The notes under the pieces were generated by a model, which did not search any database, had not been told where the DNA came from, and was given only the letters and a program-made list of their open reading frames with translations. Of a stretch of 64,000 nucleotides of DNA, positions 4,060 to 54,176 are shown piece by piece. The position numbers and the translations under genes were made by a program. The first letter of the stretch is position 1; every line of letters begins with the position of its first letter. Source of the stretch: Macrostomum lignano (taxonomy: Eukaryota); NCBI GenBank assembly GCA_002269645.1, contig NIVC01000712.1:372001-436000 (forward strand). Direction: 5' to 3'.

Positions 4060-4340
4060 GTATGATTCCAAAGCCGCGAGGCCCCCATAGCAAACTCCAA
4101 GCTAAAAACAGGACAGGCGTTAGCCCTGAGGCTGCGCCCAATCCTTGCCAGCAGTAGAAGAGCTCCGCGTGAGAGTGGCGTTTGCGATCTGCATCCGGCC
4201 GGAATCCTTAGTCTTAACCTGGTACTAAGCGAGTAGCTGCGATGGCGCCTCCGCGAGCTTCGTTGAAGTGGAGGCAAAATATGACGCGGTGTTTCTTCCT
4301 CCAAGCCACAATTTGTAAGTGAAAGCCAATTGTTAATCGC
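4060..4340 (-). mobile_element. Degenerate 3' fragment of a LINE with a C-terminal CCHC knuckle (I/R1/Loa-like)
   Basis: Minus translation NCGLEEETPRHIL. The 3'UTR TGGGCGCAGCCTCAGGGCTAA...GGGGCCTCGCGGC resembles that of the fragments at 10986-11308 and 51760-52150. Confidence 0.55.
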
Positions 4341-4725
4341 CCGGTTGACGGATGACTTCGGGTCAGGTAGCTTAACCAAGGGGAGCGAACTATCCTGGGG
4401 TGCTGCTTCGTTTGGCGAGTTGATCTACCAGCTCGTTGCCAAGGATGTCGCTATGGCCTGGTGTCCAGATCACGTTAATTCTTTTTAGGATTGCTAGGTT
4501 TTGCAAGCTTTGGAAACAGTCTGAAACTAATTTAGTTGATAGCTATCAACTATAGAACAAGGTCACTCACGATCGACTTAAGGTGATTTTTTTCAAGTGT
4601 CAAAAAGGTCAAAGTAAATTGCTTGAAGAGTCCTGTGCTGAAACTTTTGTTGCTATTTTTTCCAGTAAAAATGTCGAGTTTAAATTAAGCTTGCTATGAA
4701 ATTACCCACAGGTTCGGTAGATTTC

Positions 4726-4733
4726 TATAAAAG
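4726..4733 (+). promoter_or_regulatory. TATA box of the DNase II gene
   Basis: TATAAAAG 30 bp upstream of the ATG at 4763. Confidence 0.5.
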
Positions 4734-4762
4734 CTATACGCACATAGCATACAAAAACGCGC

Positions 4763-6362
4763 ATGAGTTTGAGACGGATCAACTGGAAGCTGGCCGCGTA
4801 CCTGTTGCTACTAACGGTTTCAGCCAGATATTCTCAAGGTCAGCCGAAGAGATTCTCTGAAGAAGGTCAGGAAGATGATTTCGATAGCGATGAAGAGGCT
4901 ACTGAACCTACTGATAGTTTGATGGAGCGGATCAAACGCGAAAGTCAAATTTTAGATCGTCCAAGGACTCAAAATTTTTTACAAGCCTTAGAAGGCGGCG
5001 ACGCTTCGCAAGCTCTTCGTATCATACATGAGCAGCAGACAGGACTAACGAACCAGGCTCAGTCGCGGCAGGCTAACGAGAATAATAGCCTTGACAGGCT
5101 GGGAGGACTTTTAGATTTAGAAAGGATGGTGAAGAAGGTTTATGGCTCATCAACTTCTGGTGAGGGGCTTAGCAGCAATTTAGCTTCCATAAACCAATCC
5201 GCTGGTGCCACTGCTCCTCATTACCAACAGCTCAACAGCTCAGCTTTTGAAACTATTGGTGAACCACGACAGCCAAACACAGGAGCACGAGCTGTCTTTA
5301 GGGGGCACTCTTATGCACGCTGGTATCAGGTCTTCGACCCCCCCCCCCTTATCATCCAGCCAGAATGAGGCGTGGGTGAACGACCTAGTAGAAGATTTCA
5401 GGAAAGTAAAGCTTGCGCCAACCCAAGAAAAGAAGTCGCCACCGAGCTGTCTGAATTCTGTCGGCCAGCCAGTCGATTGGTTTGCCACCATTAAAAAAAA
5501 CTTAGGTTGGAACTACTTGTCCGTGACTGCGGCAGGTTGGGAGCAAGATATGCCTAACAATGACATTCGGAAAAGTGGGCCAGTATTGAAAACGCTGATG
5601 CAAGCTACTGCCAATGCCAGGAGATCATCCCACAGAATACTCGCCTACAACGATCAATATCCTGATGCAAAGTCATCGCAACGCTACGCTCACGCCAAAG
5701 GAGTCGTAATGTTTGACACCTACGAACTACGAGGCTTTTGGATTGTTCACTCGGTTCCATATTTTCCATACTTAGACATGCCAATTTTGGTATTTCCTAA
5801 AAGCGCTGAAATATATGCGCAAAGTTTCGGCTGCTCCACAATCATAGGCCAGTCACAATTCAATTCTGTTATACAACAGCTTCGAGCAATGAAAGTGCCG
5901 ATGTGCTACTCCTACAATGTGCCGCCGGTAGAAAATCAAATTCCATACCACCTCCTTGGTGGTATTACTAGTATTAATCTTGGACCACTTCGCCAGGTTT
6001 TTCATTTGGCAAAACCAAATAATTATAATTCCTGTATATATTGTGACCTATCTCACCATTTAAAAACAAACATGCTGACAGAGACATGGACAAGACAAAA
6101 GAAAACTTATAATCACATCCAAAGCGACGTTAAAGTGTTCGGAGTCGACTTTGCTAATGGCTTTCAGTACAGCGCTAATCAGGATCATTCGAAATGGAGC
6201 GTCAGTGACACCAGTTCGAAGCCCTGGCTTTGCATTGGGGACTTGAACCGACGCATTACAGATAGGGGAGGCGGCGTGCTGTGCTTTCAGAGCGAATTGG
6301 CGCAGCGATCTTTCTGCCAAGCAGCTCGAAATGATAACTCGCTTCCATTCAATTGCTATTGA
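4763..6362 (+). CDS. DNASE2: Secreted deoxyribonuclease II-family protein, intronless, with long N-terminal extension; split by a 1-nt frameshift at the C11 run 5338-5348
   Basis: Signal peptide MSLRRINWKLAAYLLLLTVSARYSQG. DNase II motifs SCLNSVGQPVDWF, ILAYNDQYP, HAKG, GFWIVHSVPYFP, ETW, DHSKW, CIGDLNR, RGGGVLC. ORFs 4763-5368 and 5205-6362 join if the C run is 10 or 13 long. Confidence 0.9.
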
Positions 6363-8157: not shown

Positions 8158-8587
8158 CTTTTAATTTACTAAATTAGGATCGTTTTACACAAACGATTTG
8201 ACTTATAATTATTGAAATTGGAAGCAAGCATCTAAAATTGGCGATCAATATAACTCTTTTAAACTAAATTTGCCTTCCTCTCGCGTCTTTACTTTGCGGT
8301 ATGAAAAAACATTAGCCAATCAATACTCATATTTGGACCGCTGTGCTAGAATTAGTAGAATACTAAGAGTTGAATGCTGAAAAATTTCTATTGACTGTGA
8401 CAAAACAAAACCTATTATTCTCTGCCGAGAGAAAGGGTATATATACAGGCTGCTCCGATGCCATTTTAGCTGGCTAGATTCCCTAGGCAGATGATATAGG
8501 ACTTCGGTAGGGAGAGCAGTTTGATTCTAACTATCGATTAAACCCAGAACTAAGCCACTGAAACTATTATAACTGGAACCGAGCCAT

Positions 8588-9333
8588 ATGCGACCGTCTC
8601 AAAGAATCTCCGGTCTCGCTCTCATCTGTCTGCTATTGGCCAAGTTCCATCTGGCAGTCGCCAGAGATTACACTCGAACCTACCTGGGCTGCTACCCGGA
8701 CCCAGATAACAAGGACTTGACAGGCCTTACCGGAGTCTCAGCGCTGCTTGGCTACACTGTCAAGTCTTGGTTGGCTGTGCAGCACAGTTCGATGACGTTC
8801 GAATTGTGCGGCTCCATCTGCTCGGCCGGCGGCTTCCCCTACATGGGGCTTCAGGTTCGCGTCGAGTGCTTCTGCGGCTGGAGCTACGGGAATCATGGTG
8901 CCCCTGTCGAAGCCGACTGCGATATGAGTTGCGAAGGAAATTCGAGCCAGATCTGCGGCGGAGATACCAGCAGCTCGGTGTTCGGACTGCAGTACACCAG
9001 TGAGTCAATTTCATTACAATGACGCAATTAACCGATCGTGATCATGTACACGTAGCGTTCAACTGATGTAATGAGGCACTAAACTGTTTTTTTTTAATTC
9101 CAGGCCCGAACCTTTTCAAGCGATCAGCCAGGACTTACTTCTCCGTGACCAACCTGACCTCGTTCTACAGGAATGTGACTGCCGTGGAAAAGGCTCAGTG
9201 TCTGCTGCAGTGCATCAACGACTGTCAGGCTGTGCTGTACAACCAGCAGCTGAGCTTGTGCCATCTGCTGAAGTTTGTCCTGTTGCCAACCGAGCTAAAT
9301 ACTACTGATGGAGAGTTCTACATCAGATGCTGA
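8588..9333 (+). CDS. Secreted WSC-domain protein with C-terminal PAN/Apple-like module, join(8588..8999,9104..9333), 213 aa
   Basis: Signal peptide; WSC motifs YLGCY, MTFELCGSIC, YMGLQVRVECFCG, CDMSCEGNSSQICGG. GTGAGT donor at 9000 and TTCCAG acceptor at 9103 are phase-compatible. Exon 2 has CLLQCINDCQAVLYNQQLSLCHLL. AATAAA at 9394. Confidence 0.85.
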
Positions 9334-10985
9334 GGTGCAAAACTGTGCATTCACTGTGATGCTCTGTGCGATGCAAGTCGCGTGACAAAATGAAATAAAA
9401 GTGCGCCTATATTAAAACACTTCAAAAAATTTGCCGTCTTAAGCGACTGATTAATTTTTACGAGTTGAATCCTTGCTTCAGCATTTCTGACACAGCAGTT
9501 TTGAAGTGTTTGCTAAGACGGGCTTTGCCTCCATGTGGAAACATTGTATCCAATTACTGTCTTCTAAGACCTAGGTTTTGCCGTTTGTAGAGTAGAGTTT
9601 GGTTAAACATTTTAGGCAGGACAGATGGCTCAACAAAACACGGCAGAGTTGGAAAATCGCATTCTAAAGCATATTGGAGCTGGTAACTAAGGCGGGCTGC
9701 TTAAATACTGTAACTTGATGTATGAGAAGAACAATAGCTACCAGACACAGCTAATACTATTCTTTGAGGGAATTTTGGAGGGTAAAACAGCCAGTGGAAG
9801 ACGGATTTGTTTTAAACAAATAAACTTAGAGAGCTGCAGAGCTTTAGCACATTCTACATGCAGTACCAGGGAATCAATATACCTTTTAAATTACGAAATC
9901 CCAGATGCTTGTTAAAATACTTCATCTTATTGAGGAGCGGCAATGATAAAAAAGTCTAATATGAAGCAAACTGAATACGACTGCACGAAAAAGTCAGAAA
10001 GCTTAGAAATTGTGTTTGCCATGACGGCTTTCGTTTTCGCATACAGACTCTAGCGATGTCTCCAGATCAAAAAAAGCAAGTTAAAACTTTCTGTCTTCAT
10101 TGTCGCTAAGGTACAAAGGCTAGAAGGATTTCTGTGAGATTTTCTCAATCCGCGAGTAGTTTTCTGTGTTTTGTACAGTGAATGTATTGAATTGCAAGCC
10201 GGATTAAAGGAAACAAATGCGGATATATTGACGACGTCCATTGCTTCCAGGGACATAGCCAGGAATTTGTATTTGGGGGGGGGGGCATCATTCGAGGCGC
10301 TCTTCATCGTGCCAGGGGGGCGAAACTGCTGCAAAGGAGGCGTCAAACATCCTTCCTGGCTTTAGTCCTGCCCAACAATTTTAGTGCGAAGAAGGAATTG
10401 CTTCTCCATGCAATTTTTTCTTGGTAGACAGAAGTGTACTAAGGGGCTCACTCTTTTTTGTGTCATCCACAAGTAGTCATCTAAAGAAAAAAATTTCAAA
10501 TGATACCTCCAAAATCCAGGAACCTTGAAAAAGCATGCCTTCTGCAAAACGAGTTGGGCTATATTAAATTCAGTCAGTTTAATTGGCCAATTATTTATCA
10601 ACAGGTGTCAAAATCCCATTGGATCAATCGTCGATAAGACTTCATTTTAATTGCATATTTTCTGAGTTTATGATTTTCTCACAGAAAATTTTTTTGACGA
10701 AGTTTGGCGCCTCCTAGAGCCTTATAATACACTCGAGCCCCTTGCTTTTTTCTGCCTCCTGCAAGAGAATCGTAAAAATGAAAATGTGACGTACATATTC
10801 ATGTCTTCAAGTGCTGTATGTGCAGGCTGTAGTTACTGATTTTCCAATAGATTTTAGACAATCGCCATGGGACCTAACCGGCCTAAACTTAGTCAAATCC
10901 CTGGTGTGCAAACTGCAAAGCATTGAAAGCTTTCGTGCTCTTTTTCTATGGAATACTGAATTGCCCGATGCCTGATGCAGTAAGC

Positions 10986-11308
10986 CACTACTACTTACTT
11001 ACTTACTACTGACGGGGGGCGCAGGCGCCGCGAATAGGCCGCGAGGCCCCTATCGCAACCCCAAGGTAAAAGAGCACAAGGATTAGCCTTGGGGGTGCGC
11101 CCAGTCCCCGCCAGTAGTCGGCAGGTCCGCAGTGGAGGCATCGGCGACCCTCATCCGGCCGGAGTCTCGGACGAAGGCGCGGAGGTCTCGGATATTGTCC
11201 GGGGTGGTCAGCTCGTCCATCCGCTGGGGGTGGCCGAGGTATTTGTGCCGCGCCTTGTTGAAGTAAGGGCAGAAGATGACGTGATGCTCCGCGGTCTCCT
11301 CTCCAGGT
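10986..11308 (-). mobile_element. 5'-truncated LINE 3' end (CCHC knuckle, (AGTA)n tail)
   Basis: [24 protein letters not shown], followed by a 3'UTR and AGTAGTAAGTAAGTAAGTAG tail. Related copy at 51760-52150. Confidence 0.75.
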
Positions 11309-11730
11309 GTGGATACACCAGGTGTGCTGACTGGGGATACACCAGGTGTGCTGACTGGGGATACACCAGGTGTGCTGACTGGGGATACACCAGGTGTGCT
11401 GACTGGGAATACACCAGGTGTGCTGACTGGGGATACACCAGGTGTGCTGACTGGGGATACACCAGGTGTGCTGACTGGGGATACACCAGGTGTGCTGACT
11501 GGGATACACCAGGTGTGCTGACTGGGAATACACCAGGTGTGCTGACTGGGGATACACCAGGTGTGCTGACTGGGAATACACCAGGTGTGCTGACTGGGGA
11601 TACACCAGGTGTGCTGACTGGGGATACACCAGGTGTGCTGACTGGGGATACACCAGGTGTGCTGACTGGGATACACCAGGTGTGCTGACTGGGGATACAC
11701 CAGGTGTGCTGACTGGGATAGACCAGGTGT
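11306..11730. repeat. 24-bp minisatellite GATACACCAGGTGTGCTGACTGGG, ~17 copies
   Basis: Direct inspection; 23/24-bp units with internal palindrome ACACC-A-GGTGT and no spacers. Confidence 0.95.
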
Positions 11731-12256
11731 GATAGCAGGACTACTGACTACTTTTAGATGTTTGTGACCTAGCCCCCTAGTACATGTACTTAAAGCTACT
11801 TATAAAAATCTGCCTGCATCATAATGTCAGCTACTTCAACCACAGCCGGCGCACAAGTCCCGGGGAGAACAACTATGATCTTATCCCATGAAAATTGCCG
11901 CGTCATTAAGGCTTCATAAATTGAGCGATAACTGTTGCCTCATTGTTGAAGTAAGGGCAGAAGATGACGTTTCCAATACTCGTAACTCAAACAGTTTTCT
12001 GAGACCGTGTATACGCTCGTATTTATTTGATAAATTCAGCAAAATATATTGACAATTTCGTAGAAGTGTTGAGTTTTATTATTGACTCGATGAAAAATGC
12101 GCATTTTGTTTTTTATTCAAGCAACTTAGGTAGGCGCATGTAGTATTCATAGGTAGAAGAAAAGCATGAGAAAGTATTAGAACGCAAACTGATATGCGAA
12201 TATAAGCATTTAGAGAGAAATTTTATACGCTTTTTCAAGTTAGATCAACCTTAACT

Positions 12257-12698
12257 CTGTGGAACCCTGTGGAACCCTGTGGAACCCTGTGAAACCCTGT
12301 GGAACCCTGTGGAACCCTGTGGAACCCTGTGGAACCCTGTGGAACCCTGTGGAACCCTGTGGAACCCTGTGGAACCCTGTGGAACCCTGTGGAACCCTGT
12401 GGAACCCTGTGGAACCCTGTGGAACCCTGTGGAACCCTGTGGAACCCTGTGGAACCCTGTGAAACCCTGTGGAACCCTGTGGAACCCTGTGGAACCCTGT
12501 GGAACCCTGTGGAACCCTGTGGAACCCTGTGGAACCCTGTGGAACCCTGTGGAACCCTGTGGAACCCTGTGGAACCCTGTGGAACCCTGTGGAACCCTGT
12601 GGAACCCTGTGGAACCCTGTGGAACCCTGTGGAACCCTGTGGAACCCTGTGGAACCCTGTGGAACCCTGTGGAACCCTGTGGAACCCTGTGGAACCCC
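12257..12698. repeat. 10-bp minisatellite GGAACCCTGT, ~44 copies
   Basis: Direct inspection. Confidence 0.98.
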
Positions 12699-12987
12699 TG
12701 CGTCTTCTCCTTGTTGCTTTCGGTCCGGTTGGCTAATTGAAGTTATCAGCGCAATTTAGTTTTAAGTAAAAAAATGCATATACTGTGCGTAAAACTCGTT
12801 TTTTCAAGTTTAGTTTTAGACCAACAAAGCACATACGAAACTTGTGCAGCAAATTGAACACGCAGCAGATTGGCTCATTGCACTATCGAGCCGATGATAA
12901 ATTGGTCGCATTCGCAAAGCAGATTGGCTATGCAGTGGGCTCCATCACATTCGTGACATGCATTGGTGAACTGTGTGTTATTGCTTC

Positions 12988-16183
<3,196 letters not shown>

Positions 16184-16609: not shown

Positions 16610-17432
16610 TTTTTTTCTACCAATTTTGGCTTCCTGTCCCCAATTCTGGCTTCCTGTCACTAATTCTGACTTCCTGTCACTAATTCTGACTTCCTGTCTC
16701 TAATTCTGGCTTCCTGTCCCCAATTCTGGCTTCCTGTCACTAATTCTGGCTTCCTGTCCCCAATTCTGGCTTCCTGTCACTAATTCTGGCTTCCTGTCCC
16801 CAATTCTGGCTTCCTGTCACTAATTCTGGCTTCCTGTCACTAATTCTGACTTCCTGTCCCCAATTCTGGCTTCCTGTCACTAATTCTGGCTTCCTGTCAC
16901 TAATTCTGGCTTCCTGTCACTAATTCTGACTTCCTGTCACTAATTCTGACTTCCTGTCACTAATTCTGGCTTCCTGTCACTAATTCTGACTTCCTGTCAC
17001 TAATTCTGACTTCCTGTTTCTAATTCTGGCTTCCTGTCCTTAATTCTGTCTTCCTGTCCCCAATTCTCGCTTCCTGTCACTAATTCTGGCTTCCTGTTCC
17101 TAATTCTGGCTTCCTGTCACTAATTCTGGCTTCCTGTCCCTAATTCTGACTTCCTGTTCCTAATTATGGCTTCCTGTCCCTAATTCTGGCTTCCTGTTCC
17201 TAATTCTGGCTTTCTGTCCCTAATTCTGGCTTCCTGTCTCTAATTCTGGCTTCCTAACACTAATTCTGTCTTCCTGTCTCTAATTCTGGCTTCCTGTCCC
17301 TAATTCTGGCTTCCCGTCACCAATTATGGCTTCCCGTCACCAATTATGACTTCCCGTCACCAATTATGACTTCCCGTCACCAATTATGGCTTCCCGTCAC
17401 CAATTATGGCTTCCCGTCACCAATTATGGCTT
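16610..17432. repeat. 20-bp minisatellite TAATTCTGGCTTCCTGTCAC, ~41 copies
   Basis: Direct inspection; paralogous array at 29911-30240. Confidence 0.95.
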
Positions 17433-18005
17433 GCTACCATGCAATTTTGGCTTTCCTATTCCAATTTGAGCTAACCCATAATCGATTTAGGCTCATGTCA
17501 CCGCTTTTCTCTGAATATATTTCATTGAAAAATTAAAAACAAAAAAAATTCTGCTAGAAAAAAATACAGAAATAGTAGCTCTGGAATACTTGTACTAGAA
17601 GTAGTATGATTCAGTTTAATTCGGTTTAGAATTGAGGGGAAATCATTAAAGTATGCTACACATATGGAAAGGGATATGCAAAAATTATGGCCTTGAAATG
17701 GTTGCGATTGTTTAAATGTTTTAAATTTTATTGGCCAAACAACTTTGTACTTTAGAAGTACATTTTTGCGCGATCATAAAATTTTTAATTTGTTTCACGT
17801 CTGCCTGTAGCAAACTAGCGATAGTACACGAAGTTGCTCCCATCGAGATCGTAATGCCCAGCCGCCTCAGTCCAGCATTCTTCATCGCTAGAGGACAGAC
17901 TCTCTGGCTCTGTGTCCTCCTCTGCATCATCTATGGCGGCTACAGTCACTAAGAAAGGCGAAGCTGGTAGATTCTGGAATTTGAGTTTGCAGTCAAGTTT
18001 CATTG

Positions 18006-19200
18006 CGGATGTCTAACAGCTGACACACGGATGTCTAACAGCTGGACGCACGGATGTCTAACAGCTGACACACGGATGTCTAACAGCTGGACACACAGAT
18101 ATCTAACAGCTGACACAAATGTCCAACAGCTGACACATGGATGTCTAACAGCTGACACACGGATGTCTAACAGCTGACACACGGATGTCTAACAACTGAC
18201 ACACGGATGTCTAACAACTGACAGACGGATGTCTAACAGCTGACACACGGATGTCTAACAACTGACACAAAAATGTCTAACAGCTGACACATGGATGTCT
18301 AACAGCTGACACACGGATGTCTAACAGACTGACACACGAATGTCTAACAGACTGACACACGGATGTCTAACAGACTGACACACGGATGTCTAACAGACTG
18401 ACACACGGATGTCTAACAACTGACACACGGATGTCTAACAGCTGACACACAAATGTCTAACAGCTGACACATGGATGTCTAACAGCTGACACACGGATGT
18501 CTAACAGACTGACACACGAATGTCTAACAGACTGACACACAGATGTCTAACAGACTGACACACGGATATCTAACAGCTGACACACAAATGTCTAACAGCT
18601 GACACATGGATGTCTAACAGCTGACACACGGATGTCTAACAGACTGACACACGGATGTCTAACAGACTGACACACAGATGTCTAATAGACTGACACACGG
18701 ATGTCTAACAGACTGACACACGGATGTCTAACAGCTGACACATGGATGTCTAACAGCTGACACACGGATGTCTAACAGCTGACACACGGATGTCTAACAG
18801 CTGACACACGGATATCTAACAGCTGGACACATGGATGTCTAACAGCTGACACACGGATGTCTAACAGACTGACACACGGATGTCTAACAGACTGACACAT
18901 GGATGTCTAACAGCTGACACACGGATATCTAACAGCTGACACACAAATGTCTAACAGCTGACACATGGATGTCTAACAGCTGACACACGGATGTCTAACA
19001 GCTGACACACGGATGTCTAACAGCTGACACACGGATGTCTAACAGCTGGACACACGGATGTCTAACAGCTGACACACGGATATCTAACAGCTGACACACG
19101 GATGTCTAACAGACTGACACACGGATGTCTAACAGCTGACATACATATGTATAACAGACTGACACACGGATATCTAACAGCTGGACACATGGATGTACAA
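18006..19200. repeat. 22-bp minisatellite CTGACACACGGATGTCTAACAG in the last intron of X_A
   Basis: Direct inspection; paralog at 30805-32232. Confidence 0.95.
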
Positions 19201-20419
19201 CAGTCCGACACAGAGACCAATAATGTTAAAGGACCCGAGGGCCGAAATTATCTGACCCCCGTATTAGCTTTAACCACTTTAACTTCAGGTAAAATTTCAC
19301 AATGTTCCAGATTTCAGTTACAATAGCTGAAGTTGAAGTTGCAGTAAATAGCACAAAATTCAGCTTAGATTATAAACAATAACTACAGAATGATACTTTC
19401 AAGAAAACAGCTCGTAATCTGATTCGAAAATAGCCAGATTTTAATCTAATTTCGCAAGTTCGCTTTCCAATGAGATTTTTATTACAAGCGTATGTTATTA
19501 TTTAAAATAGCTGGTAATTTTGCAAAAGTAGAACTTCAGCCAGCAGCTTGTAAACAGTTTATACAGTGTTTACCATCACTGCAGCGTGCCCATATCAATT
19601 TGATGGCTACTGGTATGATTGCATTTTTGAGTATGGTCACACTTGCGACTTAACCTACTCATGATAAACTACGTAATGAATGCATGCATGCACCATACCT
19701 GATGAAAGGCCCCTGAGGCTGCTGTGGAGACTGTGCAATCGGTTTCGCTGCCAAGCTCGTCATCATTCGACTGATCGTACGAGTATAGCGAGGACGTCGT
19801 TCTCACTCTGGAGAATCTGACAGCCAGCTTGCAGCCCAGACCGATGGCGGAGACTGCAACTGCAAGCAGAAATATGCTGACGAATATTCGCTTGGCGTTC
19901 GCGGACGATTTCCCTGTGGAATTGAAATGAGGCCATTGATTTTAGTGCTATCGGCAGGTAAAATCAGATCTGCAGTTATTTGGTCAGCACTCACTTCCAG
20001 TTGAGAACTTGGCTTCAACATCCGGGTACGGCAGGCCTGACTGACTGACGCTGCACCTGACCAGCCAGTCCCGGCTTTCCTGACCTTCGGGCAGCCGAGC
20101 CCAGTGAGAGCTGCTGAAGCCAGTCTGCTGCAGTTTGCATTGGCGAGCTTCTATAATTATCAATTTATTGCTAAAAGCATTGCGATTCCTCTGAACTTAC
20201 CTGTGCGCTGCTCATTTTTAGCCGGATGCGGGCCGCTGCACCGCCACCGACTTCGGTTAGCCAGCAGTTGTGGCTGACATTCCATACGCTGCACTGCTGT
20301 GACGTCACTCTGACTGTAAGCCATCGATGCTGGGTGCTGATCAGGTGGATGACCGTCACGCAGGGCTCTGCAGCGATTGGCAGTGTGCTTAAAATGAAAT
20401 AATAGTAATATTGTCGTAT

Positions 20420-20710
20420 TAATAATAATAATTGAGTACACCTTGACCTGATGGCCAGATGTGCAACCGACAGCTCAGCCGCAGCTATTGCGCGGCGCAT
20501 CTGAAGGCTGCGTACGGCTGTTCAGTCAGCGCCACACACAGCCTCAATTACCCCAGCTAATGCTGGCACCCATTTTACAGCTGGGTGAACTGAAGAAATG
20601 CAGAGTTAAGTGTGTTTTTCATGGACACAAATTGTTCCCAATGGGATAGGGAATCGAACCCCCGACCTTCAAGTCGTGAGTCCGACGCTCTAACTATTAG
20701 GTTACAAACC
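20420..20710 (-). mobile_element. tRNA-derived CORE-type SINE in X_A intron 8
   Basis: Minus strand has A/B boxes (TAATAGTTAGAG, GTTCGATTCC), then CACTTAACTCTGCATTTCTTCAGTTCACCCAGCTGTAAAATGGG resembling the MIR/CORE domain, and an (AAT)n tail. Confidence 0.75.
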
Positions 20711-22245
20711 CGGAAATTTGGAATGTAAATTGACCCATTAATTCTGTCGACTTTTCTGTTTTTGAAGAATTAAAAAGCAGTTTAAAAATACTTGGAGTTT
20801 GAATCTTATGCAGACAGACAGGACATAAAAGGTACCAAATTATGTACAGATTCAATTATATAAACTTTTCAGAAAAAAGCTCACCACTTATTGCTGATAT
20901 GAAATAGTGCTCATTTCTTTGCACTGCAACGTTATCCTCCACTTGGACTCCAAGCCCGCTCTCGCATTCCAACGTGCCGTTCAGCATCGCGGCGCTGACC
21001 TGGAATCTGAACTGAGACGCCACGACCACAAAGGCCTGATTTTTGTCATCTTTTGCGACAGCTTTTTTTACCTGGAAATTGTTTAAAGGTCAGCAACGAG
21101 TAGCAATAAACACTAAAATTAATAGGCACAGTTGATCTCACGGGGCTGTAGTGTAGAAAGAGAAGTTATGAGTTCATCTCACATTCGTGCGATTTTCATC
21201 CAGACGCCACTCAGAGCTGGCAGAACTGATGCTGCAGCTGTGATGCAGTGCTGGGTAAGCCGGAGCTGATGTGACATTCACAGTGACGCTGCTGCCGCTG
21301 ACCCACACGGGTGACACCGATATTGTCAGGCTGGCAGGGGGAACTGAAATAAACATGTTGAAGTAATTGCAATATCAACTTCCAGGATACATATTTCTGA
21401 TTAAAACGCTCTCACATGAAATCCCAATAGTCTGCTCAATGCGCTCAGCAGGTCGGTCTGTCAGAAAGCAGCTGAGTGTCGCATCGTGCATTGCCGAGGT
21501 GGCTCTGAGTTCGAACACGGCAGGCTGCGTCTGGCTGTTCAGCTGCCGTGATGGAGAGTTTTATAAGAGAATTTAGCAAAGCTCCACACAATTCGAAATC
21601 TATTTAAAAAGATTAACGCACCTGTCTCAGTTGATGAGTCAGCTATACTTCAAGAGACAGCCAAGCGAGCCGTCAAGACAGCTCGAAACCGAGAGGCAGG
21701 CCAAGTCCCCAGCCTTCATGACTTGCAAGTTTTTAAGCGGACATTGCGAACTGTTCATCACGGTGAGGTTCAGTGGAGCAACAGGACCTAAAAAACCGTC
21801 ACGTCCTGTCACTCGATTGTCTTAAAAATCAACGAATCATTTAGAAGTAGGCAGACTGTTCATATTTTAATAAAGACCTGACAGTTTCATGGCACTCCAA
21901 CATAGCGGAGCTTTCGTCCAGCTCCTGACCAGCATGTACCGAACTGTGCTCTGAAGCAGAAAATACATGTACCCTTTCTTTTACTTTTATTGAAAGAAGC
22001 AATAAATAAATAATGCAATCCCGCACAGGTGCACTACGAGTTTGAGAAAAACGTTGCTACCTCCTTGTAAGCTCTTCCGAGCTGCTTCCAGCGGCTGCTG
22101 CTGTTGAAGGCCTCCCAGCTGGCGTCGCACGGATCCTCCAGCTGCAGCTCCAGTGGGAGGCTCGAGGCTCCGACCGCTGACACGGGCGAGCCGACCGGAG
22201 CTGCTGTGTGCCACTGGCCATCTGCAACACGAGTGCTTGGCTGCT

Positions 22246-22461
22246 AGCTGGTCTCACACTGTCTCAGAGTGCTAATTAGATGCTAGCTGGTCTCACACTG
22301 TCTCAGAGTGCTAATTAGATGCTAGCTGGTCTCACACTGTCTCAGAGTGCTAATTAGATGCTAGCTGGTCTCACACTGTCTCAGAGTGCTAATTAGATGC
22401 TAGCTGGTCTCACACTGTCTCAGAGTGCTAATTAGATGCTAGCTGGCCTCACACTGTCTCA
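22246..22461. repeat. 39-bp minisatellite GCTAGCTGGTCTCACACTGTCTCAGAGTGCTAATTAGAT, ~5.5 copies (X_A intron 2)
   Basis: Direct inspection. Confidence 0.95.
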
Positions 22462-23986
22462 AACTTTGTGTCCCAGACTCCCTCTGCCTCATCATGCATC
22501 ATGAGAATGAGTCGGTCAGCGTCACTCACCCCAGTCTCGAACGCTCACCGCCTCCAGCATCATCGGCTGCCTCAGCTGCATCACAAGCCACCGAGGCCCG
22601 GACCGCACAGCAGCAGGGAATCGGTTTGTCTCTGACTGCCGACTCTCCCACCAACGGCAGTGCGCACCGCTGGGTTGCCAGGTGCGCAGAACGTCAGCCC
22701 TGCTCAGCTGCACTGTCACTGCAACATGTTTGTTAAAAAGAACTCAGCTTTCGTGTCCGGCGCATGAAAAAACGGTTAATAAAGAGTTTGCTTCAAGTTG
22801 TTAGCCAAACTTTTCCAGCTTACGATTTTCGTTGTCTTGTGTGCAGTTTGAGAACGCCTTGAGGACCTGCAGACTGAGAACGAGAAATAGCAGAAGCTTC
22901 CTGCACCGCCAGCAAGCCATTCGGGCGTTGCAGTTTATTTACAAACGCTGACGGTTGAAAGCGTCTTGGCTGAAAATCGTTACCATTTTTAATTGATTTC
23001 GGACCGGTGTTTTACGCAGAAACGACTGGTCTTGGACTGGTTAATCACGAGTGGGTGTCTCTGCAATCGCTGCATCTAAAATAAGTATACGGCCATCTAA
23101 ATTGGGTTTGATATAACTATATTTATAATTTCGTCTCCGAAAGCAGCCAAATCGACTCTAATTGGATTGCAACTATGTAAACCAGGGGTCCAAACATTCG
23201 AGATAGCTTGTGTATTTATATTTTCAGATCAGTGGAAAAACGCCTTCGAATAATTCGCTTGTATTCGTAGCTAGACAAGCAAAGCGAGTTTTCTGCACAG
23301 AAAGCCATCCTAAAGTCACTAGTATTTTCGCGTTGTTTTTCCGACTAATTTTACTAAAAGTAGTGAAGTAAGGAAAACTCTAGCAGTAATTATTTGCGGG
23401 AAAAATTCAATTTACTGAAAACAGTGGCTACACACAATAAAGTAAAAAAGTGTGTGAAATGGATGCCAGTAACTACAAATTTGCACGAGTTTAAAAAGAA
23501 ACAAAAAATATATTTACAAATTTACAAAAGTCGAATTGTCGAAAATTTAAATACAACTTTCCTTTTTTAGTTTGACTTTACGATTAAAAGCTAATAGTGA
23601 GATTCGGCAAAAAGTTTATTGTGAGGGATTAAAAATATGAATAATGCACAAGAGAAATACGAGAATGCTTGCTTCTCAAAATTAGGCTGATCGGGCAGTT
23701 TTTGTGACGAAAGCTCACAATGGGTAAAATGTAAAAATCCAATATTATGATTATAACGAGAAATAAAAAAAAAAACATTAATTATCGTAAACCTTCACTA
23801 CTGGTGATAAAATTGACGATACGCAATTAAGTATACGTATACTAAAGAACCCATGTTGAGTTGAGTCTACAGTGGACTCGAAAAAGTCAGCAGCCATTAG
23901 TTTAGAAATAATCTACAAAATATATTTATACATTTTGGTTTACTTTCAAAAACTTTTTGCAATTTTTCGTTTTTTTGCGTAAGCGT

Positions 23987-24237: not shown

Positions 24238-25108
24238 GTAAGCGTTAAGCCTAGCTTGAAGTGATAAGATCGCAGGTATGAAATTATCTGACAGTGATGT
24301 TACAATATACAACAGGTTTGAACAGTATAACTGTTAATTCGTATGGAACCTCAATACTCGCCGTATCTGAGGCTTATTTGCTCAAACTGCAAGTCTTTGA
24401 TATGAGGCGGTGTTTTTATAGAACACACGGTGCTAGGACTGGAGTTTCTTTGACTCGCTGATGAGTGGCGATGGCGCACAAAAAGTACGAGTGCGAGTGC
24501 AATTGTGAATACACCAAGCACTACGGCACCAGCAAGCCCGATAACCAAAGCGATACGAGGCTGCTGGCCAGTGGCGTTTGTATCCGCTATAACCGTCGCG
24601 TCATTAATTGAACTTGCTGAGCTCATCACGGCTGAGCTTTTCTTCATCTGCTTTAATATTTGGATCAGCTCTTTTGAGTAGCCGTGTGTGCAGCTCGCAG
24701 TCTCCGGTAAGCTCAGCAGCGACAGCATTGGGCTGCTGCAGTGGCCGAACTCGACCGCAGGTCTGTCTGATTCAGCAACATTCAGAGTGGCACACCTGCC
24801 AGTGGTAGACTCTGGCGACACTCTGGTTTTTAAAGAAACATTTTTTACCGCAATTTAAGGCCCACTTTTACGTGAACTATACTAGCATTAGGACTTACTT
24901 AAAGTCAGCAGGTAGCTGAATTGGTAGGCAACCATTGTCCCTCTTGGACATAACGGACATCACGGTTTTATCAGTCTTGAGAAACACGCCTAAACGCAAC
25001 GGCTGGCTCAGACTCAGGGGCCGTCTGTACGGGATTTCTTTAAGCTTGGCTTCGTCTGAAATTGAAATTAATAATCTGATTTAATTGTTTTATTACTAAT
25101 GACGTCTG

Positions 25109-28100
25109 TGCTGTGGCTATAAGCCAAGCCAAGTCGCACCATAGACAAAAAGTCGAGCCGAAGATCGGCTAGTTAATTTAAGTTCAAGACTTGTTCATTA
25201 AACTTAAATTAACTAGCAGACTTGTCCAGCCAATGATCGGAAACAACATGCTCAACATGATCGACATTGAGAAGCTCGAGGAAGGAAAGTCGTTTCCACG
25301 ATGGATGGAACGCTTCACAGTTACGGCCAATCTCTGCAAATGGGGAGAGGAAGAAAAGGCGCTGATTTTGCTCATGCGTCTGTCTGCTGGTCTGTACGAC
25401 ACGCTGGCGGATCATCTGGCTCCTACATTACCGAGCACATTGTCTTTCGAAGAGCTCAAAAAGGCGCTGAAGGAGATCCTGGTGCCTAAAACATATCTCC
25501 TGTCTGAACGGTACGCCTTTCAAAATGCCAAGAAGGACGCAAAAGAGGGCATTCGAGCATTCGCTGAGAGGCTGCTCAAAGCGTCGGATAAATGTGCATT
25601 TAGCAACAAGGAGGAACGGCTCCGGGACCAATTCATCTGCGGACTGAATGACAAGGTCATCATAGCAAAGCTGCTAATCCGAGATTTTGAGGAGCTAACC
25701 TTCAAGGCTGCTGTGGCGGAAGCCGAGGCGTATGCGTCACTGAAGGACACACATATAATGCAGTCAGCGACGGCATCAAAAGCAGAAGGGACGGTCATGA
25801 AAATCGGCCGCTCAAAACCAACACTGTCAAAGCCGATCGCACCCAGAGGAGACAAGAAGTGCCCTCGTTGTGGTGGCAACCAGCATCCAAAGGCAGCATG
25901 TCCGGCTATGGGAAAAACCTGCAAGAGATGCGGTAAGCCAAACCACTTTCAAAAGGCATGTCGGTCAAGCGTATCCAGTCAACAGAACTTTGTGGCTGAG
26001 GATTCTGCACAAAGAGACATTTTGCACACTGACACTGGCAGAGAAGCGTCGTGCTCTACAGTGAAGCTGGCTTGTCAAGTAGAAGGCAAAATGCAATCCA
26101 TAATCTGTCAGATTGACACAGGAGCTTCGGTTTCAGTTTTGTCCAGCAAGCTGTGGTGAAAATTTGGAAAGCCGAAGTTGCGAGGTAGCACCTCGACTTT
26201 GGTGGGCTACACCGACGGACACAAATTCGACCAATTGGGCTCATTGCCTGTCGTCACGGAATGGAAAGGAAGAAACATCAAGATTACGTTTCAAGTAGTA
26301 CGCTCAAACCGCAACTTTGCATTGCTCGGACGAGATGTCATCAAATTCAATCCGGAATGCGTCTCTATTGGACATACAGAGATGAAGGACTCAGTTCCAT
26401 TCAAGGCAAGCTTACGATTATTCGATGGCGCAGTGTCCAAGTACATCAAAGCGAGGCCTGTGCCATTTGCATTGCGCGAGCGTCTGAAATGCGAGATCGA
26501 CAAGCTTGTGACTGACGGAGTTATCGAGCAAGTTAGCTTTTCGCAGTGGGCGTCACCCATTGTGACTGTGCAAAAACCCAATGGCGGTCTCAGGATCTGT
26601 GTCGACTATAAGACGACAGTCAATCCACAGCTACAGCAGGATAGCTACCCGTTGCCGACAGTTGAAGAAGCATTCGCAGCAGTGACAAATTGCGAATACT
26701 ACACGATTTTGGATCTCGAGAAGGCATATAACCAGGTGCACCTAGACGACTCTTCCAAGGATATCACTGTGATGTCTACACCATTCGGGAACTTCAGATA
26801 CAACCGCCTTGTCTTCGGATTAAAGACTGCCCCCAGTATTTTCCAACGTTATATGGTGGAAGTTATTCAAGGAATTTCTGGAGCAGTAGCATATTTCGAT
26901 GATATTCTCATTGGCGGCGAGACCAAAGAAGACCTCAGAGACAGAGAAGCTGAAGTTAGAGCACGGTTGGCCAAGCACAACTTGACAGTAAACGAGGAAA
27001 AATGTCAGATAATGCAGACTCGGGTCCACTTTCTGGGTCACATTCTCGAGTCAGGGACAGTGAAGCCAGATGAAGAGAAGGTGCGCGCGTTAAGGGAGAT
27101 GTCAGCCCCGAAAAATCTACCGGAATTGGAATCGTTTCTTGGCCTCGTTAATTTCTGCGGTAAATTTATTCGCAACCTCGCAGAACTCATTGAGCCCCTG
27201 TCACAGCTTAGACGCAGAGGAGCCGAGTTCACTTGGGCAGACAAGCACGAACAAGCCTTCAATAAGGTCAAGATGGCACTGTCAGCTGAGTCTATGCTGC
27301 ATTCGTACGATCCGAAGAAACCAGTGGAGATCGAATGTGACGCTTCGCAGGTGGCCATTGGTGGTGTGCTCTCTCAGGAAGGCAGGCCCATAATCTTCAT
27401 TAGCAAGTTGTTGTCACCGGCGGAGAAGAGATATTCGCAGATCGAACGCGAAGCATTAGCGATTGTCTGGGGCATTCGGCGGTGTCACCGGTTCCTTTGT
27501 GGCAGAGAATTCTCACTAGTAACTGACCACCGCCCTCTGACCTTCGTGTTCGGACCCTCCAGTCAGCTACCAGAAAGGGTTTCGGCACGCCTGCAAAGAT
27601 GGGCTATTTTATTGTCCGGTTACAACTACAGCATAAAATATCGGAAGTCGGCGGAGATGCGATCTGATGCACTATCTAGGCTTGTAAACGCTTCGACGGA
27701 GGCTCCAACTCACGCGATTGGTGCAATTCATCTTTCAGAAAGTCATCTGCTCAAGCTGACCGATATTCGGTTTTGGTCCAGGAAGTGCCACGAACTGCGA
27801 ACTCTCAGAGAGGCAATTCAAACTGGACAGTTCTCGAACAGTGAGATGCGTAGCTACAAACCACTGGCTGGAGAACTAACAACTGAGGGAGACTTGGTGC
27901 TTCGTGGGTCCAAGATAGTGTTACCAGTTGCGCTTCGAGATAAAGCAGTGAACGCAGCTCACGGAGTACACCTAGGCATGACACGCACTAAGTCTCTATT
28001 GCGCGAGTACTTCTGGTGGCCAGGTGTCGATAAGGCTGTGGAGCGTGTAGTTGGTTGTTGTCTGACATGCAAGAAAGAGAAGCCTCTAAATCGGAATTTC

Positions 28101-29055
28101 CGAACTTCATGGCAAGCACCACAAGGCCCCTGGGATCGAATTCACATCGACTTTGCGGGTCCGATAGAAGGACGATATTTGCTCGTCATGGTTGATTCTC
28201 ATTCGAACTATCCAGAGGTGCAAGTGACACGGGACATGACATCTGCTACGGTGATCTCGAGGTTGAGAAGAACATTCTCCCAGCTAGGGGTACCGAGAGT
28301 CCTGGTGTCCGACAATGGATCAAGCTTTGTTAGTCAAGAGACACGAGGTTGGTTGACTCAAATCGGGTGCGATCATGTAACGACCCCAGCATACCACCCA
28401 GCTAGCAACGGTCTGGCTGAGCGATTTGTTCGTACAATAAAAGAAGCTGTCACTGCAAATGGATTTTCCCAAGCCGCAATCGACAGGTACCTTCTGTTCT
28501 ACCGTGCATCAGCGAGCAAAGGTCGCCAGCAGAGTTACTGATGGGAAGGAAACTGCGTGTACCTTTGATGTCAGCAGCTGGATGGAGTCCTGGTGAGACA
28601 GTAGTGTACAAGACAGAGAAGTCAACACACGAGGCCAGGCTGATCAATCCATTAGGAAGGAATACCGCGATTGTCAAGCTAGAAGACGGCAGATTCCAGA
28701 AAGTGCACAGAGATCAACTTCAACGAACAAGCTCAGATCCGAAGTCTCAGGGAGACGATCAATTAGATTCGAACAAGGATGTCAGCATAGGAAACCCAAT
28801 GATGCGTGAAAACGATGGCAACCCTGGTGGAAAGCATGTGCACGATGAACTGCAAATTGATTCTGAGACTGAGTCAGTCCGAGTGGACCATCCGTCTAAG
28901 CCAGCTATACCAGAATTGCCACGGCGCAGTACGCGGCTGGAACAAAAGCCAAGAGTGAATTACAAGGAGTGACTATTTTGAGACTTCCTTGATCACTCAA
29001 GTTTGGGACTTAAACTTTTCAAGTTATTTTTATAAAAGGGGGAGATGCTGTGGCT
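25109..29055 (+). mobile_element. Ty3/Gypsy (Mag-like) LTR retrotransposon, defective, 3' LTR reduced to 10 bp
   Basis: TGCTGTGGCT at 25109-25118 and again at 29046-29055, directly after PPT AAAAGGGGGAGA. Absent at the paralogous site near 42765. Domain order gag-PR-RT-RH-IN. Confidence 0.92.
25233..28972 (+). pseudogene. gag-pol polyprotein with an in-frame TGA (26157-26159) and a frameshift near 28520
   Basis: Two CX2CX4HX4C knuckles, DTGAS protease, RICVDY and YFDDI RT, CDAS RNase H, HxxHLG..CxxC and SDNG integrase. SPAELLMGRKLR lies in the shifted frame. Confidence 0.9.
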
Positions 29056-29409
29056 TGAACTGCTCACTAGCAGCGATGAACTGACTGATATCGGTCAAAT
29101 TCTGGAAGCTGGCCAGCTGCACACCGCCTTTGATCTTTAAAAGGCTGGTTTCAATGTCCTGCTTCACTTCTGTGACATAGTAGCAACTGCCTCTAAAGTT
29201 GAGTATGTCAGAGGCGCAGTGCTCGCTGCTGGGCAGCACTATCCTCAGGCCTACTGCACTGGCTGATTCAGCTTTCGAGTCCTTGATTGATTCTACGGCG
29301 ATGTAGGCTCTGTTTCGGGTTTGAGGAAATTAGAGCGATATTTTAAGCCTTCGTATGGTTTAGTATCTATTCAAAGGACTTTCACTGCCTCTGGACAAGA
29401 AACATGCAC

Positions 29410-29910
29410 GCCAGCACCAGGGGCTTTAGCACCAGGGGCTTTAGCACCAGGGGCTTTAGCACCAGGGGCTTTAGCACCAGGGGCTTTAGCACCAGGGGCT
29501 TTAGCACCAGGGGCTTTAGCACCAGGGGCTTTAGCACCAGGGGCTTTAGCACCAGGGGCTTTAGCACCAGGGGCTTTAGCACCAGGGGCTTTAGCACCAG
29601 GGGCTTTAGCACCAGGGGCTTTAGCACCAGGGGCTTTAGCACCAGGGGCTTTAGCACCAGGGGCTTTAGCACCAGGGGCTTTAGCACCAGGGGCTTTAGC
29701 ACCAGGGGCTTTAGCACCAGGGGCTTTAGCACCAGGGGCTTTAGCACCAGGGGCTTTAGCACCAGGGGCTTTAGCACCAGGGGCTTTAGCACCAGGGGCT
29801 TTAGCACCAGGGGCTTTAGCACCAGGGGCTTTAGCACCAGGGGCGCCAGCACCAGGGGCGCCAGCACCAGGGGTGCCAGCACCAGGGGCGCCAGTACCAG
29901 GGGCGCCAGC
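29410..29910. repeat. 15-bp minisatellite AGCACCAGGGGCTTT (main variant) / AGCACCAGGGGCGCC, ~33 copies
   Basis: Direct inspection. Confidence 0.97.
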
Positions 29911-30240
29911 TCTAATTATGGCTTCCTGTCACCAATTGTGGCTTCCCGTCACCTATTTTGGCCCTTCACTTATTTTGGCTTCCCGTTACCTATTTTGGCC
30001 CTTCACTTATTTTGGCTTCCCGTTACCTATTTTGGCCCTTCACTTATTTTGGCTTCCCGTTACCAATTATGGCTTCCCGTCACCAATTATGGCTTCCCGT
30101 CATCAATTATGGCTTCCTGCCATTAATTATGGCTTCCTGTCACCAATTATGGCTTCCCGTCACCAATTCTGGCTTTCCGTCACCAATTATGGCTTTCCTT
30201 CACTTATTTTTGTGTTCCCGTCACCAATTATGGCTTGATA
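29911..30240. repeat. 20-bp minisatellite CAATTATGGCTTCCCGTCAC-type, ~16 copies
   Basis: Paralog of 16610-17432; abuts the 15-mer array at the duplication junction. Confidence 0.9.
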
Positions 30241-30614
30241 TTACAATGCATTTTGGCTTTCCTATTCCAATTTGAGCTAACCCTTCATACAATTTACCTC
30301 ATGTTACCGCTTTTCTATTAATTTATTTCATTAAAATTAGTAGCAAAAAGGAGCAAAATCTAATAGAAAAAATCACAAGAGGCAGCAGCTCTTGAATTAT
30401 GAGTAGTATGATTCAGTTTAATTCGGTTTAGAATTTAGGGGAAATCATTAAAGTATGCTGCACATTTGGAGCGGAATATGCAAAAATTATGGCCTTCAAA
30501 TGGTTGGGATTGTTTAAATGTTTTAAATTTTATTGGCTAAACAACTTTGTACCTTAGAAGTACATTTTTGCGCCATCATAAATTTTAATTTGTTTCACGC
30601 CTGCCTGTAGAGAA

Positions 30615-36600: not shown

Positions 36601-36672
36601 TGAGAACGCCTTGAGGACCTGCAGACTGAGAACGAGAAATAGCAGAGGCTTCCTGCACCGCTGGTAAGCCAT
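30615..36672 (-). CDS. Family X receptor, copy X_B, 12 exons, 601 aa: signal peptide, discoidin/F5-8-like, Ig-like domains, TM, acidic Tyr-bearing tail
   Basis: Exons 36576-36672, 36281-36469, 34989-35149, 34812-34884, 34549-34721, 34343-34469, 34110-34270, 33834-33984, 33192-33358, 32985-33117, 32689-32903, 30615-30773 total 1806 bp with all phases compatible and no stops. SP MAYQRCRKPLLFLVLSLQVLKAFS; TM IFVSIFLLALAASAIGLGCKLAV. Domain labels by resemblance only. Confidence 0.85.
30805..32232. repeat. 22-bp minisatellite (with 18/19-bp deletion variants) in the last intron of X_B
   Basis: Direct inspection. Confidence 0.95.
33385..33652 (-). mobile_element. Degraded CORE-type SINE at the position paralogous to 20420-20710
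   Basis: Shares CACCCATTTTACAGCTGGGTGAACTGAAG and the (AAT)n tail; the tRNA head is eroded. Confidence 0.65.
35170..36212. repeat. 39-bp minisatellite, ~27 copies (X_B intron 2)
   Basis: Direct inspection. Confidence 0.97.
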
Positions 36673-40769: not shown

Positions 40770-40825
40770 CCTTGGCTATGCTCCGGGGCGATGCTCTGCC
40801 CAGGGGTGCCAGGAGGTCGCGGCAT
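40322..40825 (-). CDS. Putative short Arg-rich ORF1 of the LINE, overlapping ORF2
   Basis: ATG at 40825 directly inside the element 5' end; RSAARRTQRRRERNRRSR basic tract. Confidence 0.45.
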   Translation of the reverse strand: MPRPPGTPGQSIAPEHSQGWLGVPRPQAAAANSGKAKTPRGQRSAARRTQRRRERNRRSRAHGAAKRAGRREAEALDPPGGAGDHEAQQHRAPAVPEHPFGWQPGTAGPSRRTGARACWQSWLRRRRWTWWLCRRCLSWPAPASSVKSWELAGASCTHQRTREVMEE

Positions 40826-41180: not shown

Positions 41181-41563
41181 GTACATGTACATGTATAATG
41201 AGGGATAAAAGTATGAATAATGCATAACAGAAATTTGAAAATGCTTGCTTTTACAATGAGGCCGAGGGCAGCTTTTACAACAAAAGTTCACAATGGGCAA
41301 AAATTAAAAATTCAATATTGTGATTATAATGCAAATCGAAGTAAAAATATTCATCGTAAACCTTCACTGGTGGTGATAAAATTGACGATACGCTAGCGTA
41401 TACTAAATAACCCATGTTGAGTTGAGTCTACAGTGGACTCTGAAAAGTCACCAGCCATTATTTTAGAAATAATGAACAAAACACACAAAATATTAATGCA
41501 TCTTGGTTTCGTTTCAAATTCTGTAGACTTTCTAATTTTTCGTGCACATTTTTGTGTAAGCGT

Positions 41564-41878: not shown

Positions 41879-42000
41879 GTAAGCGTTAAGCCTAGCTTGA
41901 AGAGAAAGGATCGCGGGTATGAAATTATGACAGTGATGTTAGAATAAATCTCGTACAACAGACTTGGACAGTGTAACTGTTAGTCGCATGGAACCTCGAT

Positions 42001-54154: not shown

Positions 54155-54176
54155 ACTGCCTGCCTGTCTGCCTGCC

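Follow-up and report, generated by a model that had tools for sequence, protein, structure and literature searches.

A conserved two-tyrosine peptide, a candidate docking motif, in the tails of an immunoglobulin-superfamily protein family of Macrostomum lignano

The 64,000-nucleotide stretch of the genome of the flatworm Macrostomum lignano analyzed here (assembly GCA_002269645.1, contig NIVC01000712.1, positions 372,001 to 436,000 of the forward strand; hereafter the window) carries on its minus strand three paralogous genes, X_A, X_B and X_C, whose translated last exons share the 18-residue consensus [WF]-T-x-A-x-G-H-Y-[DE]-x-D-G-[SC]-x-F-V-x-Y. This peptide is a real, cytoplasmic and lineage-restricted motif, which is neither an immunoreceptor tyrosine-based activation or inhibition motif (ITAM, ITIM) nor any other described motif. 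Tentatively, and with a probability of about 0.45, we interpret it as a docking site for a cytosolic partner, whose binding would be switched by phosphorylation.

The motif was located by translation, a regular-expression scan and the codon table. It reads W-TEAAGHYDLDGSNFVYY in X_A (17821-17874), where only an Arg codon and the stop codon (17815-17817) follow, W-TEAAGHYELDGSTFVYY in X_B (30621-30674) and F-TEAAGHYDTDGCTFVNY in X_C (57440-57493), the latter being followed by the 15-residue extension SAFDSHSMQTARS and a stop codon. The respective tails end in ...SLSSSDEECWTEAAGHYDLDGSNFVYYR (longer read-out …AIDDAEEDTEPESLSSSDEECWTEAAGHYDLDGSNFVYYR), ...SLSSSDEECWTEAAGHYELDGSTFVYYR (…SSSDEECWTEAAGHYELDGSTFVYYR) and ...DSSSDGEEDLPQFTEAAGHYDTDGCTFVNYSAFDSHSMQTARS (…EESVEDSSSDGEEDLPQFTEAAGHYDTDGCTFVNYSAFDSHSMQTARS), each directly before the stop. 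A fourth tail used for comparison is that of P0039 (GenBank PAA78035.1, from the same assembly), which belongs to a divergent third lineage; the motif forms the C-terminus in X_A and X_B and lies 13 residues from it in X_C and 38 in P0039. The pattern T.A.GHY..DG..FV.Y had three matches in the six-frame translation of the window (17821-17871, 30621-30671 and 57440-57490) and none in 100 shuffled windows. Two invariant Tyr residues stand 10 residues apart (Y and Y+10), the first flanked by invariant G-H before and D-G after it, the second preceded by invariant F-V. A hydrophobic patch and a Ser/acidic cluster precede the motif, the cluster lying at 17878-17931 in X_A (DDAEEDTEPESLSSSDEE), 30678-30731 in X_B and 57503-57544 in X_C, all on the minus strand. 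A scan for CK2-type S/T-x-x-D/E sites was positive upstream of the motif in four of the four tails; these are candidate phosphorylation sites. The coordinates and peptides given in the preliminary description of this stretch proved right. It had also placed the motif behind an acidic Ser cluster in all three paralogs, and the translation bears this out, with CK2-type sites in each cluster.

The exons that encode the motif belong to complete genes. X_A (17815-22920, minus strand) corresponds at 100%, residue for residue, to the 531-residue UniProt protein A0A1I8J952 (P0035), whose exact mapping and splice sites yield ten annotated coding exons at 22920-22825 (signal peptide), ~22719-22531, 22222-22061, 21542-21416, 21343-21183, 21071-20885, 20367-20201, 20127-19995, 19913-19699 and 17973-17815. 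The last of these comprises 52 codons and the stop, begins at a phase-0 acceptor (ttccag/AAT) and encodes residues 480-531 at 100%. The exon before it (19699-19913; phase-1 acceptor, phase-0 donor CAG/gtatgg) encodes the transmembrane and juxtamembrane part (…IFVSIFLLAVAVSAIGLGCKLAVRFSRVR…AFHQ). Likewise, X_B (30615-36672, minus strand) equals A0A1I8J9U8 (P0034, 524 residues) at 100%, from its signal-peptide exon (36672-36577) through its transmembrane exon (32689-32903) to its last exon (30615-30773; residues 473-524, 100%). The exact match of both proteins identifies the window as M. lignano DNA, which agrees with the invertebrate origin implied by the preliminary description. An AATAAA hexamer lies 81-83 nt downstream of the stop codon in both genes, at 17727-17732 in X_A (83 nt past the stop) and at 30529-30534 in X_B, again on the minus strand. 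X_C has a clean open reading frame (ORF) of seven exons from 60518 to 57398, with one extra membrane-proximal domain exon (59322-59062), a transmembrane exon at 58658-58878 (…VSALLAAGLTLAFLVAICLSIWAFAA…SSLQ; donor CAG/gtaagt) and a last exon at 57398-57598, minus strand. The latter has a tandem acceptor (gag/cag/), so that it begins at either 57598 or 57595; in the close paralog P0057, it is the acceptor equivalent to 57595 that is used. All splice sites of the gene models are AG/GT. Two exons with phases 1-0/0-1 code for each Ig-like domain, the transmembrane exon has a phase-1 start and a phase-0 end, and the last exon starts in phase 0.

Membership of the last exon in the gene is supported by the annotated models of X_A and X_B, both of which take in the transmembrane exon and the motif-bearing last exon, and by P0039, in whose locus the motif has a last exon to itself, preceded by a phase-0 intron of 1,687 nt, an architecture as in the X genes. 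The GenBank annotation of GCA_002269645.1 was built from RNA-seq-based, genome-guided transcript assembly (PMC5730564), and the model PAA78035.1 lends indirect RNA-level support to the splicing of such an exon into mRNA.

Two further observations concern these exon structures. Exon-like segments with good splice sites, termed 0b and 1a, are present in X_A (21950-21878 and 21787-21622) and in X_B (34884-34812 and 34721-34549), and both annotated models skip them. In X_B the two segments together comprise 246 nt and are in frame, and their counterparts are real exons of the paralog P0039; in X_A a 7-bp deletion in the second segment creates a stop codon. Either the segments are cassette exons of X_B that X_A has lost, or they are decaying in both genes. 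Since the annotated isoform of X_A skips them, it is not broken by the deletion. The intron ahead of the last exon (18005-19250 in X_A, 30800-32235 in X_B) consists mostly of a ~22-bp minisatellite (ggatgtctaacagctgacacac-like).

The topology of the host proteins places the motif inside the cell. An N-terminal signal peptide (MACWRCRKLLLFLVLSLQVLKAFS) and a single hydrophobic segment (IFVSIFLLAVAVSAIGLGC) followed by the basic stretch KLAVRFSRVR can be read directly from the sequence. AlphaFold2, run with a 19-sequence family alignment, predicted confident beta-sandwich domains at residues ~160-405, which form a tandem Ig-like ectodomain. For residues 407-531, the transmembrane segment and the tail, it gave a pLDDT (predicted local distance difference test) score of 24-30 and no helices in the tail. 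A Foldseek search against the PDB matched the ectodomains of nectin-1, SIRP-gamma, SYG-2, RAGE, Necl-4 and CD22 (E ~1e-7, probability 1.0). Nothing exceeded the threshold in a Pfam search of the host proteins, in which only a sub-threshold match to C2-set_2 appeared; a Cadherin_C_2 match on P0039 was discounted as below threshold (E 0.032) and lying over the transmembrane region. By these predictions, the host is a type-I membrane protein of the immunoglobulin superfamily (IgSF) with one transmembrane helix and a tail predicted to be disordered. The combination of signal peptide, Ig-like ectodomain, one hydrophobic segment and basic residues after it puts the motif in the disordered cytoplasmic tail, which backs the cytoplasmic location claimed earlier.

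The ectodomains show features of their own. The tract that the preliminary description had regarded as converted (22046-22737, 35001-36490 and 61267-62198, minus strand) has ~98% DNA identity among X_A, X_B and X_C and holds the two coding exons for an N-terminal domain of ~115 residues (TVQLSRADVLRTWQPSGAHCRWWESRQSETNRF…LELQLEDPC). In 22 of the 22 family proteins retrieved below, this domain hardly varies, and the remaining ectodomain is only ~30-35% identical; a constant N-terminal domain joined to variable Ig domains is unusual. It was not folded by AlphaFold (pLDDT <50) and had no match in Pfam. The intron between its exons contains tandem repeats of 39 bp in X_A and 117 bp in X_B and X_C. 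Between X_A and X_B, ectodomain exon 2b (21071-20885 vs 34020-33834) is 86% identical, its proportion of nonsynonymous differences (pN, 0.144) being at least that of synonymous ones (pS, 0.126), and exon 3b (20127-19995 vs 33117-32985) is identical at 133/133 positions. Fast-evolving and homogenised exons thus seem to be mixed, patchwork-like, in a single pair of genes.

The conservation of the motif was compared between lineages. Outside the N-terminal domain, 17-residue segments were ranked by identity for every lineage pair. X_A and X_C are 34% identical overall, and the motif is their best segment (13/17), ahead of the Ig-domain core CSxWNVSHxCWL (12/17), so that the earlier claim of the best-conserved segment outside the converted tract holds for this pair. 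The motif again ranks first between X_C and P0039 (13/17) and second between X_A and P0039 (12/17). Within the tails it is 71-76% identical as compared to 27-30% elsewhere (corrected P 0.006-0.02 per pair), and 11 of its 18 positions are invariant across X_A, X_B, X_C and P0039; the ectodomains of these three lineages share only about 33% identity. Such a conserved island in a poorly conserved, structure-free tail is what is expected of a short linear motif. The codon pattern is what decides the matter: between lineages, identity within the motif is 81-86% at codon positions 1 and 2 and no more than 33-56% at position 3, with 5-8 of the 12-14 identical residues being encoded by different codons, and blastn found no match between the last exons of X_C and X_A/X_B. 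The recent duplicates X_A and X_B have last exons of 95% identity (pS 0.143, pN 0.025), and the adjoining intron and 3' flank are 83-85% identical. Because the first two codon positions were kept as the third diverged, the peptide is, judged by its codons, under purifying selection in three lineages rather than a product of gene conversion.

We compared the four tails with the known classes of tail motif. Neither the ITAM pattern (Yxx[LI]-x(6-12)-Yxx[LI]) nor that of the ITIM ([SIVL]xYxx[IVL]) or the immunoreceptor tyrosine-based switch motif (ITSM, TxYxx[VI]) occurs in any of them. NPxY is absent from all four, and NxxY occurs in X_A only (NFVY) and is not conserved. The hemITAM, YxxPhi, YxN, YxxM, YxxP and YDxV patterns are not shared as conserved elements by the tails, nor are the dileucine, LIR (LC3-interacting region), PDZ-ligand and TRAF patterns. 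The only tested pattern common to all of them is that of the CK2-type site in the upstream acidic cluster. A Pfam search of the tails returned no family at E<=10, Bravo_FIGEY and EF-hand included, and a profile built from the four tails matched no chain among the PDB sequences at E<=10, including 7XCE. The statement of the preliminary description that the peptide fits neither ITAM nor ITIM was thus correct, and its suggestion of a novel motif agrees with the failure of the Pfam, PDB sequence and protein database searches to match it to a described domain.

The motif search across proteomes that had been proposed earlier was run with the tail profile on 1.84 billion representative proteins. Four proteins were matched (P0039, P0056, P0057 and P0036), all from M. 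lignano, and no match outside Macrostomum was found among these representatives. A search with the spliced X_B model as query retrieved 22 M. lignano proteins. Beyond the window, at least five other proteins of M. lignano have the motif (P0036, P0037, P0039/P0041/P0056, P0057), and the motif-bearing proteins fall into three lineages, namely X_A/X_B/P0036/P0037, X_C/P0057 and P0039/P0041/P0056. Literature searches on the family and its accession numbers gave no mention of it in the library covered; the hosts are an undescribed, M. lignano-specific family of IgSF type-I membrane proteins.

Other members of this family do not carry the motif and have Tyr-rich tails of their own, with the endings DPVYEEVSLCVYRPV (DPVYEEV..VYRPV), YYEDPDEYWEI, YSQIGSCLKSPYVNY[SL] (YSQI..YVNY) and RVYVNQ. 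BLASTP gave no alignment between the motif and the tail of P0050/P0052 (…YYEDLDEYSQIGSCLKSPYVNYS), and the impression of homology given by the common ending [FY]VNYS is unproven. At locus L001, two tandem family genes (2010-5600 and 9208-14439) encode ectodomains that are 81-89% identical. This identity collapses at the transmembrane segment, and the transmembrane segments and tails are unrelated, one gene ending in YYEDPDEYWEITIRVNHFE (the YYEDPDEYWEI type) and the other in the GHYDLDG..FVKY motif type. UniProt A0A1I8J8U2 (P0056) is a fused model of both genes. By analogy, the layout of this locus is paired-receptor-like.

We propose that a cytosolic protein may dock on the motif in the disordered tail and that its binding would be switched by phosphorylation of both invariant Tyr residues, and possibly also of the upstream CK2-type Ser residues. 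The D-G pair could make the chain turn, with H-Y-x-x and F-V-x-Y as short strands on either side, and the partner would then recognize an extended hairpin-like epitope instead of a four-residue SH2 motif. The motif would then be one of several alternative Tyr-containing signalling tails in a receptor family. In paired signalling receptors, a shared ectodomain is combined with swapped tails, and it is the swapping of tails on a shared ectodomain at L001 that favors a signalling or docking role.

Several points weigh against this proposal. The sequence that follows the first Tyr, [DE]-x-D-G, agrees with none of the SH2 specificity classes tested, and no standard phosphotyrosine motif is conserved in the four tails. 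Eleven invariant positions exceed what SH2 or PTB domains typically need, so that a phosphorylation-independent interaction is equally compatible with the data. AlphaFold shows no hairpin or other structure in the tail, the D-G turn being suggested by the sequence only. Moreover, the absence of the motif outside M. lignano may partly be due to the coverage of flatworms in the databases. A bolder version of the docking proposal, in which the bi-tyrosine hairpin G-H-Y-x-x-D-G-x-x-F-V-x-Y would be an unrecognised immunoreceptor-type Tyr signalling motif of paired, flatworm-specific IgSF receptors that was invented independently in Platyhelminthes, is doubtful. If true, it would mean that the paired activating/inhibitory logic of the vertebrate leukocyte receptor clusters arose separately in Platyhelminthes.

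A phosphorylation-independent role could be that of a linker to the membrane cytoskeleton or a scaffold, comparable to the ankyrin-binding FIGQY segment of L1CAM and neurofascin; phosphorylation of Tyr would then do no more than turn binding off. The FIGQY segment is an extended peptide whose binding is regulated by its Tyr, and the 11-position invariant footprint of the flatworm motif would suit an extended, groove-binding peptide. By eye, the neurofascin peptide (its sequence confirmed in PDB 7XCE) resembles H-Y-D-L-D-G-S-N-F-V-Y-Y: both have an aromatic residue at -3 from D-G-S, then F-[IV] and then a Tyr at +7 from the Asp, and each is found close to the C-terminal end of an IgSF type-I protein, after a Ser/acidic stretch. 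However, Smith-Waterman alignments of the four tails with the neurofascin peptide scored no better than shuffled sequences (P = 0.09-0.28), the F-[IV] pair is off by one residue, G-Q is absent, and the Pfam and PDB searches described above returned neither Bravo_FIGEY nor 7XCE. We therefore consider this linker role rather unlikely.

The acidic cluster raises the alternative of a trafficking signal, in which a CK2-phosphorylatable cluster and an aromatic C-terminal peptide would direct sorting, endocytosis or retrieval to the trans-Golgi network. Acidic clusters sort furin-type cargo, a cluster of this kind lies directly upstream of the motif in 4/4 tails, and the motif is found in a disordered tail, C-terminally (X_A/X_B) or 13-38 residues from the end (X_C, P0039). 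The established endocytic signals YxxPhi, dileucine and NPxY are, on the other hand, not conserved across the tails, and the cluster itself is poorly conserved (6-7/17) in comparison to the motif (12-13/17). This difference indicates that selection acts mainly on the aromatic, Gly, His and Asp positions, which no known adaptor motif explains, and we regard a sorting function as rather unlikely.

That the motif is a caspase-type site (Y-[DE]-x-D-G, with aromatic P4, Asp P1 and Gly P1'), at which a dependence-receptor-like substrate would lose its last ~8 residues, is very unlikely: Y-[DE]-x-D-G is invariant in all copies and resembles YVAD/WEHD-type sites with a small P1' residue, but the invariant T, A, G and H upstream and F-V-x-Y downstream are left unexplained, and the freed fragment would have only 7-8 residues in X_A and X_B. 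A similarity that is purely historical, due to recent duplication or gene conversion, with the peptide having no function of its own, deserves even less credence. X_A and X_B are indeed recent duplicates, as the identity of their last exons indicates, and gene conversion has evidently been active elsewhere, in the N-terminal tract (X_A vs X_C) and in exon 3b (X_A vs X_B), but for the motif of X_A/X_B, X_C and P0039 the near-random third codon positions next to well-kept first and second ones, together with the missing blastn match and the divergence of the flanking tail, contradict this explanation. The Ca2+-binding, EF-hand-like loop once suggested by the D-x-D-G string can be dismissed almost entirely, as the 12-residue pattern D-x-[DNS]-x-[DNSG]-G-x-[ILV]-x-x-x-[DE] fails in every copy, Gly being absent from loop position 6 and Glu from position 12, X_B has Glu in place of the first Asp, X_A and X_B end 7 residues past the G, before loop position 12, the tail model lacks flanking helices, and Pfam gave no EF-hand match.

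The window contains further elements around the X genes. Members of a second paralogous family, Y, alternate with them (~12990-14920, 24354-29329, 41200-43610 and 51444-52120, minus strand); they are single-pass membrane proteins (e.g., …IALVIGLAGAVVLGVFTIALALVLFV…), for which a C-type-lectin-like identity was considered and found no support in Pfam. The UniProt models P0037 and P0051 each fuse a Y-like and an X-like gene, which indicates that the adjacency of Y and X recurs elsewhere in the genome. Upstream of X_B, an intact 1,039-codon ORF (37659-40775, minus strand) represents an insertion of a non-LTR (non-long terminal repeat) retrotransposon of the LINE (long interspersed nuclear element) type. 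It has Exo_endo_phos and RVT_1 domains, and its G+C content is 66%, the background being ~45%. Micro- and minisatellites are plentiful, for example at 11308-11731, 12253-12697, 15126-15680, 16619-17466, 29374-29928, 52763-53497, 54000-54750 and 56830-57190. On the plus strand, a DNase II gene (5193-6359), mostly one long exon, has as its best match, at 80% identity, M. lignano BOX15_Mlig032952g1 and is therefore a paralogue or homeologue of it and not the same gene; an ORF with a WSC domain (8573-9019; Pfam E 3.6e-17) lies nearby.

Tyr-based tail motifs such as ITAM, ITIM and NPxY are the signalling route inward for many Ig-type surface receptors, and to our knowledge almost all that is known of them was learned in vertebrates and a small number of invertebrate models. 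Here, a strongly constrained motif with a different consensus is found in a flatworm IgSF family that is lineage-specific, has expanded and is arrayed in tandem. The family also bears signs of rapid evolution in ectodomain exons and of exchanged tails. Should the motif serve for docking, it would provide a handle on an uncharacterised signalling pathway in Platyhelminthes, possibly one of recognition or adhesion; should it do no more than bind a local scaffold, it would be a useful family marker of limited general interest. Since transgenesis and RNA interference are available in M. lignano (PMC5730564), the motif is directly testable in this species.

Among known systems, the nectin/Necl, SIRP, CD22 and SYG-2 (nephrin-like) proteins provide the best ectodomain fold matches (Foldseek E ~1e-7) and share the single-pass type-I topology and a short signalling or scaffold-binding tail. 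They differ in having only 9-13% sequence identity to the flatworm proteins and in lacking the invariant N-terminal domain, and their tail motifs (afadin/PDZ E/A-x-Y-V, ITIM, YDxV) are absent from the flatworm tails. Similar to furin and other PACS-1-type CK2 acidic clusters, every flatworm copy has a Ser-rich acidic cluster with S/T-x-x-D/E directly upstream, although this cluster is less conserved than the aromatic/Gly/His/Asp peptide after it, to which the known signals have no counterpart. With L1CAM FIGQY (Bravo_FIGEY), the motif has in common its position in a C-terminal segment of an IgSF adhesion-type protein and the succession aromatic-x-x-D-G-S...F-[IV]...Y after a Ser/acidic stretch; the similarity is not significant, there is no hidden Markov model match, the register of F-[IV] differs, and the flatworm ectodomain lacks FN3 domains and has the family-specific N-terminal domain instead. 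From ITAM, ITIM and ITSM, the motif is distinguished by the absence of Yxx[LI] and [SIVL]xYxx[IVL], by its Tyr-to-Tyr spacing of 10 with invariant G-H and D-G around the first Tyr, and by 11 fixed positions as compared to 3-4. What it shares with them is the setting: a short conserved Tyr peptide in a cytoplasmic tail that is disordered, on type-I receptors with several Ig domains whose genes form tandem arrays and whose relatives combine near-identical ectodomains with alternative tails.

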